Shown piece after piece: positions 20,476 to 52,191 of a stretch of DNA of 64,000 nt. The DNA is taken from the NCBI RefSeq assembly GCF_001447785.1, contig NW_015163619.1, positions 338,514 to 402,513 on the forward strand, given 5' to 3'. How positions within the stretch are numbered: position 1 is the stretch's first letter; each line of letters starts with the position of its first letter. The notes beneath the pieces are model-generated. The model searched no databases. It was not told where the DNA came from and saw nothing but the letters and a program-made list of their open reading frames with translations. A program made the translations under genes and the position numbers. The stretch comes from Gekko japonicus. Taxonomy: Eukaryota.

Positions 20476-20959
20476 TAGGGTTACCAGACCCCCAGTCCAG
20501 GTGGGGTTTTCCCTGATTTTTGGGGCTTCAGCCCACCACCAGCCAGTTGGCCAGTGGGGGAAGCCCCGCCCCCAAGCCTGACCACCCACAGCCACCCCTT
20601 TCCCTTCTCTCCTGATCCCTCTCCTCCAGCTGATCAGGATCCCTTTAAATGCTTCTGGCCAGTGGGGACCGGGCCTGCTGTGCCTGAATTCCAAGCAGCA
20701 TTGCCACTTGGAGTTCAGGTCCGTGGCCCATGGCCACCCCTCTCCCTCCCCTCCTGCAAGATTTAAAGGGCCCTCCACCTGATCAGCAGGCCCTTTAAAT
20801 CTCACAGGAGGGGAGGGAGAGGGGTTGCCACAGGTGATCGTTCTTGGGGGATTGGGGGTAGCCCCAAAGTGATGTCATTGCATTGGGGATGCCCCACCCC
20901 CTCTAGGACACCCCCCCCAAAGTCCCCCACTGGGGACGAAGATGGACCTTGCAGCCCTA
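20476..20959. mobile_element. hAT MITE, TAGGGTTGCCA family
   Basis: Ends TAGGGTTACCAG / TTGCAGCCCTA; degenerate 8-bp TSD AGTATCAT/AGTATTAC (6/8). Confidence 0.75.
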
Positions 20960-22253: not shown

Positions 22254-22903
22254 TTGTTGTTGTTCAGTCGCACAGTCGAGTCCAACTCTTCGCGACCCCA
22301 TTGACCAGCTCCCACCAGGCCCTCCTGTCTTCCGCCATCCTCTGAAGTTTGTTCAATTTCATGTTCGTTGCATCGATGAAACTGTCAAACCATCCCATCC
22401 TTTGCCATCCCTGTCTTCTTTGACCTTCAATCTTTCCCAGCTTCAGGGTCTTCTCCAGTGAGTGCTCCCTTCTCATTTGGTGGTCAAAGTATTTGAGCTT
22501 CAGTTTCATTATCTGGCTTTCCAGGGAACAGTCAGGGTTGATTTCTTTTAGGATTCACGGATTTGATCTTCTTGCAGTCCAAGGGACTCTCAAGAGTCTT
22601 CTCCAGCACCATAGTTCAAAAGAATCTATTCTTCGGCACTCGGCCTTCCTTATAGTCCAACTCTCGCAGCCATACATGACTACTGCGAATACCATTGCTT
22701 TGACCATGTGGACTTTTGTTGGCAGGGTGATGTCTCTACTTTTTATCATGCTGTTTAGGTTCGCCATCGCTTTCCTCCCAAGGAGCAGGCGTCCTTTAAT
22801 TTCATGGCTGCTGTCACAGTCTGTGGTGATCTGGGATCCCAGGAGCGTGAAGTCTGTCACTACTTCCACGACTTCCCCTTCTATTTGCCAAGGAGTGATG
22901 GGG
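22254..22903 (-). mobile_element. BovB/RTE LINE, 5'-truncated copy
   Basis: Near-identical to the 3' 650 bp of the full element (48750-49391); (CAA)n tail; peptide MYGCESWTIRKAE..FELWCWRRLLRVPW. Confidence 0.95.
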
Positions 22904-48100: not shown

Positions 48101-48749
48101 CTTGTAAAGTTTTCCATTTAATCCTTGGCCTCTTGGGATGCCAAACAAATTGCCTGATAGCTCTATCAAGATCCGTGAAGTACTGTTTTCTCTTCAAAAT
48201 TGGTTAAATTTGGGCTAAAAATAAAAATCTCGGCAGTATATTCATTTTTATGGTTGCTATTTTGCCCATAAATGATAGATCTAAGTCCTTCCATTTAAGC
48301 AAATCTTTTTTTCTTTCTTCCAAAAGTTTAGTATAGTTATCTTCCATCAATGAACTACTTCTATTGGACAGTACTATGCCTAGATATTTAACCTTTTTTG
48401 TTATTTCCATGGAGGAAATTTTGTGTATCTCTTGTATTTGGTTTTGCATACAGTTTTTAGTTAATATATTTGTCTTCTTGCAGTTTATTTTAAGGCCTGC
48501 TACTTGACCATATTCTTGAATTAATTCCATCAAGTGATTGATTGATGTTATGGGGTCTTCTATTATGAAAACAAGATCATCAGCAAAGGCTTGTAAATTA
48601 AATTCCTCTCCTCTTATTTTAAGACCTCTTATCTGGTCATTTTCTCTCACTAGGTCATTCAGCATTTCCAGAGCAAAAATAAACAATAATGGTGATAGAG
48701 GGCAGCCTTGCCTTGTCCCTTTCTGTATTTCAGTGTTTTGAGTCATATT

Positions 48750-51700
48750 TGTTGTTGTTGTTCAGTCGCACAGTCGAGTCTGACTCTTCGCGACCCCATG
48801 GATCATCTCCCGCCAGGCCCTCCTGTCTTCCGCCGTCCTCTGAAGTTGGCTCAATTTCATGTTCGTTGCATCGGTGACACTGTCTAACCATCTCATCCTT
48901 TGCCGTCCCCGTCTTCTTTGACCTTCAATCTTTCCCAGCATCAGGGTCTTCTCCAGTGAGTGCTTCCTTCTCATTTGGTGGCCAAAGTATTTGAGCTTCA
49001 GTTTCATTATCTGGCCTTCCAGGGAACAGTCAGGGTTGATTTCTTTTAAGATTGACTGATTTGGTCTTTTTGCAGTCCAAGGGACTCTCAAGAGTCTTCT
49101 CCAGCACCATAGTTCAAAAGAATCTATTCTTCGGCGCTCGGCCTTCCTTATAGTCCAACTCTCACAGCCATACATGACTACTGGGAATACCATTGCTTTG
49201 ACCATGCGGACTTTTGTTGGCAGGGTGATGTCTCTACTTTTTATCATGCTGTTTAGGTTCGCCATCACTTTCCTCCCAAGGAGCAGGCGTCTTTTAATTT
49301 CATGACTACTGTCACAGTCTGCAGTGATCTGGGATCCCAGGAACGTGAAGTCTGTCACTACTTCCACGACTTCCCCTTCTATTTGCCAAGGAGTGATGGG
49401 GCCGGATGCCATGATCTTAGTTTTTTTGATGTTGAGCTTCAAGCCCACTTTTGCGCTCTCCTCTTTTACTCTGAGCAAGAGGCTCTTTAGATCCTCTTCA
49501 CTTTCAGCCATTAGAGTGGTATCATCTGCATATCTGAGGTTGTTGATCTTTTCCCCAGCAATCTTAATTCCCGCTTGTGATTCATCCAGGCCAGCATTTC
49601 GCATGATGTACTCTGCATATATATTAAATAAGCAAGGCGACAATATACATCCTTGTCGTACTCCTTTTCCTATGCTGAACCAATCAGTTGTTCCATATCC
49701 GGTTCTAACTGTCGCTTCTTGGCCCTTATACAGGTTTCTCAAGAGACATGTGAGGTGGTCTGGTACTCCCATCTCTTTAAGGACCTGCCATAGTTTGTTG
49801 TGATCCACACAGTCAAAAGCTTTAGCATAGTCAATGAAGCAGAAGTAGATATTTTTCTGGTACTCTCTTGCTTTCTCCATAATCCAGCGAATGTTGGCAA
49901 TTTGATCTCTAGTTCCTCTACCTCTTCGAAACCCAGCTTGTACTTCTGGTAGTTCTCTATCCACGTACTGTTGAAGCCTAGCTTGTAGGATCTTGAGCAT
50001 GACCTTGCTAGCGTGTGATATGAGTGCAATTGTGCGATAGTTTGAACATTCCTTGGCATTGCCCTTCTTTGGGATTGGAATGTATACTGACCTTTTCCAA
50101 TCCTGTGGCCACTGTTGCGTTTTCCAAATTTGCTGGCAAATGGAGTGCAGCACTTTAACAGCATCATCTTCTAAGACTTTGAATAGCTCAGCTGGAATAC
50201 CATCACCTCCACTAGCTTTGTTGTTAGCAATGCTTTCTAAGGCCCATTTAACTTCACATTCCAGGATGTCTGGCTCGAGGTCAGTGATTATACCGTCGTG
50301 GTTGTCAAGGACATCGAGGTCTTTCTTGTATAGTTCTTCTGTGTATTCTTGCCATCTTTTCCTAATCTCTTCTGCTTCTGTTAGGTCCCTACCGTTTTTG
50401 TCCTTTATCATGGCCAGCTTTGCATGGAACGCTCCCTTGATTTCTCCAACTTTCTTGAAGAGATCTCTAGTCCTTCCCATTCTATTGTTTTCTTCTATTA
50501 CTTTGCACTGTTCATTCAGGAAGGCCTCCTTATCTCTCCTTGCTGTTCTCTGGAAATCTGCGTTCAGTTGGGTAAATCTTTCCTTTTCGCCTTTGCCTTT
50601 CGCTTTCCTTCTTTCCTCTGCTATTTGTAAAGCCTCATCAGAAAGCCACTTTGCTTTCTTACATTTCTTTTTCTTTGGGATGGTGGTGATTGCTGCCTCC
50701 TGTACGATGTCACGAACCTCTGTCCATAGTTCTTCAGGCACTCTATCTATCAAATCCAGACCCTTGAATCTATTCTTCACCTCTACTGTATATTCATCAG
50801 GGATGCGATCTAGGTCAAACCTGAATGGCCTCGTGGTTTTCCCAATTTTCTTCAGTTTAAGTCTGAATTTTGCAATGAGTAGCTCATGATCTGAACCACA
50901 GTCAGCTCCAGGTCTTGTTTTTACTGACTGGATAGAGCTTCTCCATCTTTGACTGCAAATTATATAGTCAATCTGATTTCGGTGTTGCCCATCTGGTGAT
51001 GTCCATGTGTAGAGTCGCCTCTTAGGTTGTTGGAAAAGGGTGTTCGCTATGACCAGTGTGTTCTCTTGACAAAACTCTGTTAACCTTTGCCCTGCTTCAT
51101 TTTGCTTTCCAAGGCCAAACTTGTCTGTTATTCCAGTTACCTTTTCACTTCCTACTTTAGCATTCCAGTCCCCTATGATGATGAGGACATCATTTTTTGG
51201 TGTTAGTTCTAGGAGGTGTTGTAGGTCTTCATAGAACCGGTCCACTTCAGCCTCTTCTGCATCAGTGGTTGGGGCATAGACTTGGATTACTGTGATGTTG
51301 AATGGTTTGCCTTGGAATCGGACAGAAATCATTCTGTCATTTTTGAGGTTGTATCCCAGTACTGACTTTTGCACTCTCTTGTTGACTATAAAGGCCACAC
51401 CATTTTTTCCATGAGATTCCTGGCCACAGTAGTAGATATAATGGTCTTCTGAGTTAAATTCGCCCATTCCTGTCCACTTTAGTTCACTGATTCCTAGGAT
51501 ATCAATGTTTAGTCTTGCCATCTCATTTTTGACCACATCAAGCTTACCTTGATTCATAGATCTTACATTCCAGGTTCCTATGTAGTATTGTTCTTTGCAG
51601 CATCGAACTTTCCTTTCACCATCAGACACATCCACAAGCTTTGGCCCAGCCGCTTCACTCTTTCTGGGGTTACTTGTACTTGCCCTCTGCTTTTCCTCAG

Positions 51701-51956
51701 TAGCATATTGGACACCTTCCGACCTGAGGGGCTCATCTTCCGGCGTCATATCTTTTAGCCTTTTGTTACTGTCCATGGGGTTTTCTTGGCAAAGATACTG
51801 GAGTGGGTTGCCGTTTCCTTCTCCAGGGGGATCACTCTTGGTCTGAGTTCTCTTCTGTGGCCTGTCCGTCTTGGGTGGCCCTTCACGGCATAGCCCACAG
51901 CTTCATTGAACTGCTCAAGCCCCCTCGCCACGACAAGGCAGTGATCCATGAGGGGG
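48750..51956 (-). mobile_element. Full-length BovB/RTE LINE (~3.2 kb)
   Basis: (CAA)n tail, ~180-bp 5' UTR, single ORF, perfect 12-bp TSD TTGAGTCATATT (48738-49, 51957-68). Confidence 0.97.
48762..51776 (-). CDS. BovB/RTE polyprotein: APE endonuclease + reverse transcriptase, 1004 aa, uninterrupted
   Basis: GTWNVR, GISE, VYAP, GDWNA, IDY, GSDH (APE); QAGFR, FIDYAKAFD, GVRQGCILSP, YADD (RT); C-terminal RRRGRQRMRWLD. Confidence 0.97.
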   Translation of the reverse strand: MDSNKRLKDMTPEDEPLRSEGVQYATEEKQRASTSNPRKSEAAGPKLVDVSDGERKVRCCKEQYYIGTWNVRSMNQGKLDVVKNEMARLNIDILGISELKWTGMGEFNSEDHYIYYCGQESHGKNGVAFIVNKRVQKSVLGYNLKNDRMISVRFQGKPFNITVIQVYAPTTDAEEAEVDRFYEDLQHLLELTPKNDVLIIIGDWNAKVGSEKVTGITDKFGLGKQNEAGQRLTEFCQENTLVIANTLFQQPKRRLYTWTSPDGQHRNQIDYIICSQRWRSSIQSVKTRPGADCGSDHELLIAKFRLKLKKIGKTTRPFRFDLDRIPDEYTVEVKNRFKGLDLIDRVPEELWTEVRDIVQEAAITTIPKKKKCKKAKWLSDEALQIAEERRKAKGKGEKERFTQLNADFQRTARRDKEAFLNEQCKVIEENNRMGRTRDLFKKVGEIKGAFHAKLAMIKDKNGRDLTEAEEIRKRWQEYTEELYKKDLDVLDNHDGIITDLEPDILECEVKWALESIANNKASGGDGIPAELFKVLEDDAVKVLHSICQQIWKTQQWPQDWKRSVYIPIPKKGNAKECSNYRTIALISHASKVMLKILQARLQQYVDRELPEVQAGFRRGRGTRDQIANIRWIMEKAREYQKNIYFCFIDYAKAFDCVDHNKLWQVLKEMGVPDHLTCLLRNLYKGQEATVRTGYGTTDWFSIGKGVRQGCILSPCLFNIYAEYIMRNAGLDESQAGIKIAGEKINNLRYADDTTLMAESEEDLKSLLLRVKEESAKVGLKLNIKKTKIMASGPITPWQIEGEVVEVVTDFTFLGSQITADCDSSHEIKRRLLLGRKVMANLNSMIKSRDITLPTKVRMVKAMVFPVVMYGCESWTIRKAERRRIDSFELWCWRRLLRVPWTAKRPNQSILKEINPDCSLEGQIMKLKLKYFGHQMRRKHSLEKTLMLGKIEGQRRRGRQRMRWLDSVTDATNMKLSQLQRTAEDRRAWREMIHGVAKSQTRLCD

Positions 51957-52191
51957 TTGAGTCATATTACCATTTACTATAATTTTAGCAGATTGCGTTT
52001 TATATATCGCTCTGATCATTGTTAAAAATTATGATCCACAATCCCATGATGCCAGTTTTTGCTATAAAAATCCCCAAGATACATTATCAAAGGCTTTCTC
52101 TGCGTCTAGAAATATTAACACCATCTGTTTCTCTGGGTGTATTTCATAGTACTCTAGGACATTTATTAGAGCCATCCATCCTACTCTTTAC

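Follow-up and report, generated by a model that had tools for sequence, protein, structure and literature searches.

A stretch of 64,000 nucleotides (nt) of the Gekko japonicus contig NW_015163619.1 (positions 338,514 to 402,513; hereafter the window) carries on its minus strand, at 48750-51956, a full-length BovB/RTE retrotransposon with an intact open reading frame (ORF), a (CAA)n tail and a target-site duplication (TSD). Analysis of its 5' untranslated region (UTR) indicated that the first 128 nt of the element RNA are probably a self-cleaving ribozyme with the nested double pseudoknot of the hepatitis delta virus (HDV) ribozyme, a kind reported for RTE-clade retrotransposons. The features described here lie on the minus strand, and RNA positions are counted along that strand from nt 1, which is window position 51956.

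The 5' strand of the first helix, P1 (nt 1-7, CCCCCUC; 51950-51956), forms seven of seven pairs with nt 31-37 (GAGGGGG; 51920-51926), and cleavage is predicted 5' of C1 (51956). P3 (GCC/GGC, nt 18-20/28-30; 51927-51939) has all three of its pairs and closes loop L3, UUGUCGU (nt 21-27). P2 joins nt 10-17, GGAUCACU (51940-51947), to nt 121-128, AGUGAUCC (51829-51836), with eight of eight pairs, and it crosses P1. These helices were present at the bases that an earlier note on this DNA had given for them. P1 and P3 are nested, P2 crosses both and encloses the P4 arm (nt 40-113; 51844-51917), and the nested double pseudoknot is thereby complete. In the junction J1/4 (C38 U39; 51918-51919), C38 pairs with G23 to form P1.1, and U39 stands opposite U22. 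Junction J4/2 (nt 114-120, GACCAAG; 51837-51843) contains C116 (51841), the candidate catalytic cytosine, followed by N-A-A. The layout of P1, P2, P3 and P4 supported the suggestion of an HDV-like helix order at the exact 5' end of a BovB/RTE element.

Relatives were collected by scanning public collections with the aligned N-terminal 300 amino acids of thirteen diverse homologues. The scan gave 91 sources: 80 metagenome loci kept of 506 confirmed, 10 loci in prokaryote genome assemblies, which look like contaminant contigs, and 1 locus from a viral collection. In BLASTN with the 5' UTR, the match to the closest copies was confined to nt 48-180 and that to more distant ones to approximately nt 129-178. 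Reading of upstream regions together with descriptor scans identified 5' ends of the same architecture in L079, L067, L035, L010, L016 and L013; a descriptor match was accepted only if its place was upstream of the ORF and it had in common with the others motifs that the search had not asked for. The decayed copies L084 and L088 were found by covariance model and L027 by its similarity to L035. Further candidates (L069, L023, L066, L063, L044, L055, L062, L059, L017, L077, L065 and L045/L047) were tabulated only and do not enter the ten-sequence counts given below. The automatic choice of P2 in this wider table differs from the manual one for L084, L088, L035, L027, L013 and L059.

Compensatory change in the relatives established that the fold is conserved. 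In a MAFFT alignment of the window sequence with four metagenome relatives (A4), scored against the full pseudoknotted structure of 36 pairs, 92.2% of 180 cells were paired, compared with 37.6-49.7% when partners were slid by 1-3 columns. Double-sided change was seen in 19 of the 36 pairs and in only 1-5 in the slid registers, and the observed values were reached by none of 500 shuffles. The covariation that the earlier note had asked for was thus found. The count is conservative for P1, as this alignment shifts P1 of L084 and L088 by one column and their P1 pairs are undercounted; MAFFT also misplaced P1 of L013 in another alignment. Six of the eight P2 pairs had changed on both sides in these five sequences. 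In the helices of the P4 arm (helices 5-8), 87-100% of cells were paired, and 9 of 17 pairs showed double-sided change. RNAalifold, which considers nested structure only, independently picked P2 and the P4 arm helices.

A structural alignment of ten sequences gave a similar picture. Across all helices 174 of 193 cells were paired, compared with 72-101 when the 3' partner was slid by 1-3 bases. P1 was paired in 63 of 63 cells in nine sequences, with 2-3 pair types per position. P3 was paired in 28 of 30 cells and P2 in 69 of 80, the latter with 3-4 pair types at most positions.

Within the P4 arm, the base is formed by U40-A113 and G41-C112 and is followed by a bulge, GUUC(46-49)/GAAC(107-110), an internal loop, CUGUGG/CCACAG, CCGU/ACGG and a GGG-CCA-CCC tip. 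The GUUC/GAAC, CUGUGG/CCACAG and CCGU/ACGG helices are kept with compensatory changes in relatives. The arm had been proposed to begin with AGUUC/GAACU; its GUUC/GAAC part is compensated, while the fifth pair, A45-U111, is unneeded and the base is better read as described here. The internal loop between GUUC/GAAC and CUGUGG/CCACAG fits a kink-turn pattern at the level of sequence. On its 5' side (51901-51911), the stem GUUC is followed by the bulge AAU (50-52) and by G53 and A54; on its 3' side (51847-51852), G105 and A106 precede the strand G107-C110. The resemblance to a kink-turn lies in a Watson-Crick stem, a 3-nt bulge and potential tandem G.A/A.G pairs (G53.A106, A54.G105). The bulge and the G and A positions that the earlier note had pointed out are present, and G53, A54, G105 and A106 are invariant in five of five aligned sequences. 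In contrast to a kink-turn, G53 varies among copies in this genome, and it was U in 60 of 154 RNA reads (39%) in run X24.

Several signature positions of HDV-like ribozymes were also conserved in the relatives. The motifs of L3 and J4/2 were not used in finding these sequences. L3 reads U....G(G)U in ten of ten aligned sequences, with U21 and G26 as the L3 U...G pair in the window. A passage of PMC3774820 names the L3 U and G of the reverse wobble as an HDV-like feature. J4/2 has the form G[G/A]C-N-AA directly 5' of the P2 3' strand in nine of ten sequences, L084 having U for C, and in the window it reads G114-A-C116-C-A-A-G120. C-N-A-A, which carries the catalytic cytosine in J4/2, is an HDV-like ribozyme motif, and the description of this junction as non-canonical is contradicted by both the window and its relatives. 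The first position of P1.1 (P1.1a, the third base of L3 with the first base after P1) was paired in ten of ten sequences as G-C, A-U, U-A or C-G; the second position was paired in only four of ten. L013 and L069 look fully canonical, with the L3 CC/GG P1.1, GGGCAAC, and GGCUAA or GGCGAA, and L069 also has G1.U37.

The 5' edge of the fold coincides with the termini of the element. The 12-bp TSD AATATGACTCAA can be read directly at 51957-51968, and its second copy lies at 48738-48749 after the (CAA)n tail. The TSD adjoins C1, and the element therefore starts exactly at C1, which is also the first base of the fold, as had been claimed for this copy. In a comparison of L010 with L016, identity begins exactly at nt 1 of P1, with 20 of 20 bases identical downstream and near-random similarity upstream. 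For L084 and L088, too, nt 1 of P1 is the exact point from which homology runs. In three independent cases, the window TSD, L010/L016 and L084/L088, the predicted cut site thus coincides with the element 5' end.

Searches of the window itself also pointed to this site. A strict all-Watson-Crick descriptor (7-bp P1, 3-bp P3, L3 of the form U...G and, directly next to P3, a P2 of 7 bp or more) had two matches in the 64-kb window, one of them the fold site, and none in 30 block-shuffled windows. The second match (approximately 20630-20801) was rejected as a palindrome artefact with a nearby repeat. A covariance model built from five relatives and excluding the window sequence had its best match in the 64 kb at 51912-51956, with 17.8 bits and an approximate E of 0.038. 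The nested minimum-energy fold of the UTR contains P1, P3 and the arm helices. The region behind the rejected descriptor match, 20560-20860, is GC-rich and contains two copies of a palindrome of the type GATTTAAAGGGCC...GGCCCTTTAAATC, approximately 170 bp apart.

Among the tabulated candidates, L023, L066 and the L044/L055/L062/L063 group share an ACC-U....G.-GGU core, a long P2 and a J4/2 of C-N-A-A type, and the G.U wobble at the cleavage site is present in L069 and the L063 group. L017 (208-330) and L077 (253-340) have a P3-L3 core (ACC UUC.CGU GGU) and a J4/2 of C-G-A-A. Their P2 covaries (CCAUGCCC/GGGCAUGG vs CCGUGUCC/GGGCACGG), and a P1 5' strand sought within 220 nt was not found in either. 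Approximately 120 nt upstream of the L010 ribozyme, L010 also carries a near-perfect 80-nt hairpin (440-531) with sub-threshold matches to several microRNA-precursor models on both strands; it is probably a foldback or a miniature inverted-repeat transposable element.

Several observations weigh against self-cleavage as the function of this fold, and some of them concern the evidence itself. The relatives were chosen by a search that required P1, P2 and P3 pairing, so that the paired percentages of those helices are partly selected. Taken alone, the descriptor used for that search was unspecific, matching 27 of the 91 sources compared with 7-12 when shuffled and 19 when reverse-complemented. 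A loose-descriptor scan of upstream regions matched 14 of 77, compared with 4-10 shuffled. Another loose HDV descriptor matched 19 of 91 sources, compared with 15 shuffled and 29 reverse-complemented. The core covariance model R1 recovered only 8 of 91 sources, namely its six seeds with L084 and L088; it gave two additional partial, weak matches and missed L013. Under a nested-only model, folding energy was unremarkable, with z at -0.99 (180 nt) and -1.10 (128 nt). No Rfam family matched anywhere in the window at gathering threshold. With permissive settings, the only related match was HDV-F-prausnitzii (RF02682), at 14.9 bits compared with a gathering score of 44 (E = 5.7). The Rfam search proposed in the earlier note placed an HDV-family match exactly at the element 5' end (51881-51956), at a score below the gathering threshold. 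In favour of the ribozyme, the 5' ends of four relatives likewise gave sub-threshold HDV-family matches: L016 at 32.3 bits, L013 at 31.8, L010 at 26.3 and L069 at 30.8.

Other unfavourable points lie in the window sequence. The cleavage-site pair is C1-G37 rather than the HDV G.U wobble, and P1.1 consists of one Watson-Crick pair (G23-C38), inverse to the canonical orientation, plus U.U. Among nine relatives with P1, the cleavage-site pair is C-G in eight and G-C in one. The earlier note had called G+1 and P1.1 non-canonical; its further step, that the departure might indicate a different class, found no support, given the covariation at P1.1a and C1 in L1Tc. According to a passage of PMC3185411, the experimentally active L1Tc ribozyme cuts before C1 in a GC-rich P1, and C+1 does not exclude activity for that reason.

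Host reads also bore on cleavage. Among raw reads from the same species, three RNA-seq runs covered the 5' UTR well, in a library type that cannot show 5'-OH ends. DNA contig depth and RNA depth both fell at 51956/51957 (in X22 from 76+91 to 1.4+3.1), in support of nt 1 as the element's first base; past that point, loose ends were heterogeneous. Reads running from nt 1 into varied upstream flanks numbered 59 in X22 and 54 in X24, and no pile-up of molecule ends was flagged at 51956 in the RNA-seq reads. Much of the steady-state RNA over the 5' end looks uncut, although DNA or nuclear precursor is another possible source of these reads. This read-through argues against near-complete cleavage of the sequenced RNA. 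The L3 guanine was also affected, with G26>A, at a CpG site, in approximately 19% of X22 reads.

The reads carried other substitutions as well. A121>C was present in 69% of X22 reads, indicating that P2 can do without its first pair. A42>C was present in 75% of reads, and A103>C, which restores a G56-C103 pair absent from this copy, in approximately 99%. C30>U (16%) and C89>U (10-41%) each turn a G-C pair into G.U. At window position 51946, 42 concordant X24 RNA reads connected 5' UTR nt 11 with part of the BovB ORF in inverted orientation (the ...MYGCESWTIR region), presumably marking one rearranged, expressed locus elsewhere in the genome.

The closest metagenome copies supplied a further point against the ribozyme. 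All eight (L001-L006, L025 and L085; e.g. L001, 200-393), which come from food, gut and other metagenomes and are 70-77% identical in amino acids over the N-terminal 300 (65% over a partial match for L085), are without nt 26-43. The missing segment covers the end of L3, the 3' strands of P3 and P1, J1/4 and the base of P4. These copies also have no P1 5' strand and have in common a longer 5' UTR; they keep P2 by two compensatory changes (GGACCACA/UGUGGUCC). Judged by sequence, this lineage seems to have lost the ribozyme, and absence of the core in the eight closest copies means that BovB can persist without it.

These points could be accommodated by a conserved HDV-like fold that no longer cuts in this BovB lineage and serves as a structured 5' module, the RNA's 5' end being set by the transcription start. 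Protection from 5' exonuclease, ribosome recruitment or binding of the element's protein would be possible roles for such a module, and reviews credit folds of this kind with cap-like protection and a part in translation (PMC13708176, PMC6765202). The C1-G37 pair, the single inverted P1.1 pair, RNA reads spanning the junction, at which no accumulation of ends was flagged, and close relatives that lost the core yet still spread would all be expected of it. Against it stands the retention of the J4/2 C in nine of ten and the L3 U...G in ten of ten sequences, across lineages of 40-60% protein identity, which is hard to explain without selection for catalysis; the C+1 is moreover compatible with activity in L1TcRz. 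We therefore consider loss of cutting unlikely, and self-cleavage the probable function.

A new class of self-cleaving ribozyme, HDV-like in helix order only, had been raised by the earlier note and would account for the lack of G+1 and of any Rfam family at threshold. Such a class might use an alternative pairing of L3 with J4/2, the proposed contact of GUC(23-25) with GAC(114-116). This contact was paired in 14 of 15 cells in five relatives, with no double-sided change and a score equal to that of every shuffle, and it fails outside the closest group of relatives. The elements that define the HDV fold are present, with P1.1 reduced to one pair, and align with the relatives, some of which (L013, L069) are fully canonical. 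We rejected a separate class as very improbable. Equally improbable is that the pairings arose by chance or as a by-product of DNA-level conservation (e.g. of an internal promoter) with no selected RNA structure, as a folding-energy z near -1 and the frequent matches of a loose descriptor to shuffled sequence could suggest, since double-sided change in 19 of 36 pairs compared with 1-5 in slid registers and in none of 500 shuffles, 3-4 pair types at most P2 positions and a strict descriptor absent from 30 shuffled windows all oppose it.

For the ribozyme reading, we infer the following sequence of events. The element would be transcribed within a longer host or read-through transcript. The ribozyme would then cut 5' of C1; C116 of J4/2 would act as the catalytic cytosine, and U21-G26 of L3 would sit in the active site. 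The cut would leave an RNA that starts at the first base of the element, with a 5'-OH and a compact fold at its end, and this RNA would be the template for full-length copies. A self-cutting 5' end would explain full-length copies with exact 5' ends from any host transcript, without a known promoter.

A separate H-type pseudoknot is located two bases after the ribozyme and approximately 10 nt upstream of the AUG. It consists of a hairpin at nt 131-157 (51800-51826), with stem CUGGAG(131-136)/CUCCAG(152-157) and conserved loop GAAGGAAACGGCAACCCAC, and of a 3' strand UUGCC (nt 165-169; 51788-51792) that pairs with GGCAA in the loop (nt 145-149; 51808-51812). A 19-base core was present upstream of the ORF in 30 sequences. 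In a MAFFT alignment of 29 of these, 91.2% of 319 cells were paired, compared with 37-56% when slid, and the stem had double-sided changes at six of six pairs with 96% of cells paired. The middle pair of the pseudoknot was G-C in 16 sequences, C-G in 9 and U-A in 2. The five-base loop strand had a perfect partner in 17 of 30 sequences, whereas 200 shuffles gave 3.06 on average and 8 at most. The stem and loop pairings given in the earlier note are thus real and strongly conserved, and the pseudoknot is the most widely conserved part of the UTR.

This pseudoknot probably helps translation independent of a cap, or binding by the protein that the element encodes. It may correspond to the piece kept by Bov-A-type short interspersed elements (SINEs). 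Retention of parts of RTE 5' UTRs by SINEs and bipartite non-autonomous elements (a passage of PMC5786205) and the need of RTE-based gene writers for cognate 5' and 3' UTRs around the cargo (a passage of PMC13708176) suggest a cis role in translation or ribonucleoprotein assembly. The pseudoknot is a directly testable candidate for a cis element recognised by RTE proteins or ribosomes. With RTE-type elements now used for gene writing, in which cargo is placed between 5' and 3' UTRs (PMC13708176), a map of structured 5' UTR modules is practically useful.

The two structures could together form a two-part 5' RNA machine of BovB, in which a C+1 ribozyme with inverted one-pair P1.1 and kink-turn arm would trim the element from host transcripts and the pseudoknot would be the actual 5' recognition or translation element of the entire RTE/BovB clade. 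We offer this combined model tentatively and think it more doubtful than the ribozyme assignment by itself. Under the same model, loss of the ribozyme core and the longer 5' UTR in the ruminant-like lineage would represent a switch from read-through to an own promoter.

The UTR is followed by an intact ORF of 1004 amino acids encoding endonuclease and reverse transcriptase (48762-51776; AUG at nt 181-183). The best database match, a BovB protein from Podarcis muralis, is 80% identical to it across 99% of the query length, and the protein search gave 831 proteins with E <= 1e-20 among 8000 scored candidates. The extreme N-terminus, before the endonuclease domain (51560-51776; proteins P0001-P0107), is conserved to approximately 45% identity, with recurring motifs of the type DEPLRSE, ATGEE and KPKG. 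An upstream ORF of 64 codons (51751-51949) has its AUG at nt 8, inside J1/2, and its stop 17 nt past the main AUG in another frame; it was discarded as a conserved feature after inspection by eye found it without conservation in relatives. The insertion interrupts an L1 ORF2 in the same (sense) orientation. The only other BovB piece in the 64-kb window is a 5'-truncated copy at 22254-22903 that retains the last 650 bp and is 94.6% identical to the full-length element.

Among retrotransposons that have passed horizontally between vertebrates, BovB is the textbook example, and it accounts for a large fraction of the genome in ruminants and squamates. The earlier note had allowed that its fold might already be described for RTE/BovB. 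Published work reports that RTE elements carry HDV-like ribozymes at their 5' ends, with cleavage at the 5' junction (Ruminski 2011, as relayed in passages of PMC3774820, PMC5786205 and PMC6765202). For BovB, a full-text literature search, in which Ruminski 2011 was represented only through citing papers, found no description of a ribozyme or of a pre-AUG pseudoknot.

Comparison with known systems placed the BovB fold among HDV-like ribozymes. It shares with the mammalian CPEB3 ribozyme a 7-nt L3 beginning with UU and ending with CGU, a P3 of 3 bp and a weak P1.1 in which a single G-C stands beside U.U; CPEB3 differs in being an intronic single-copy gene element with G+1 and a P1.1 in the canonical C-G orientation. 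Like the 5' HDV-like ribozymes of R2, R4, Baggins and RTE (Ruminski et al. 2011, as described in citing papers), it occupies the extreme 5' end of a promoter-poor long interspersed element (LINE), has the nested double pseudoknot P1-P2-P3-P1.1-P4, L3 U...G and J4/2 C-N-A-A, and has its predicted cut at the first base. It differs from them in having C1-G37 instead of G.U, a P1.1 of one G-C-oriented pair, and a long P4 of 74 nt with a kink-turn-like loop, and in scoring below every Rfam threshold. L1TcRz of the Trypanosoma cruzi element L1Tc (PMC3185411) cuts before a first nucleotide C, as predicted for BovB; it too has a GC-rich P1 and a position at the 5' terminus of a dispersed LINE of the APE type. 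However, L1TcRz belongs to the ingi clade and has a minimal domain of 77 nt that doubles as a promoter, and activity has been shown for L1TcRz and is predicted for BovB. Truncated twister ribozymes in RTEs are mentioned as unpublished work in a passage of PMC7761336. The 5' twister variants of the schistosome RTE Perere-3 (PMC8501958) share with BovB the clade and the proposed job, 5' processing beside the TSD with translation of the cleaved RNA. Their fold is unrelated, and part of the twister P1 is supplied by the TSD, whereas the P1 of BovB lies wholly inside the element.

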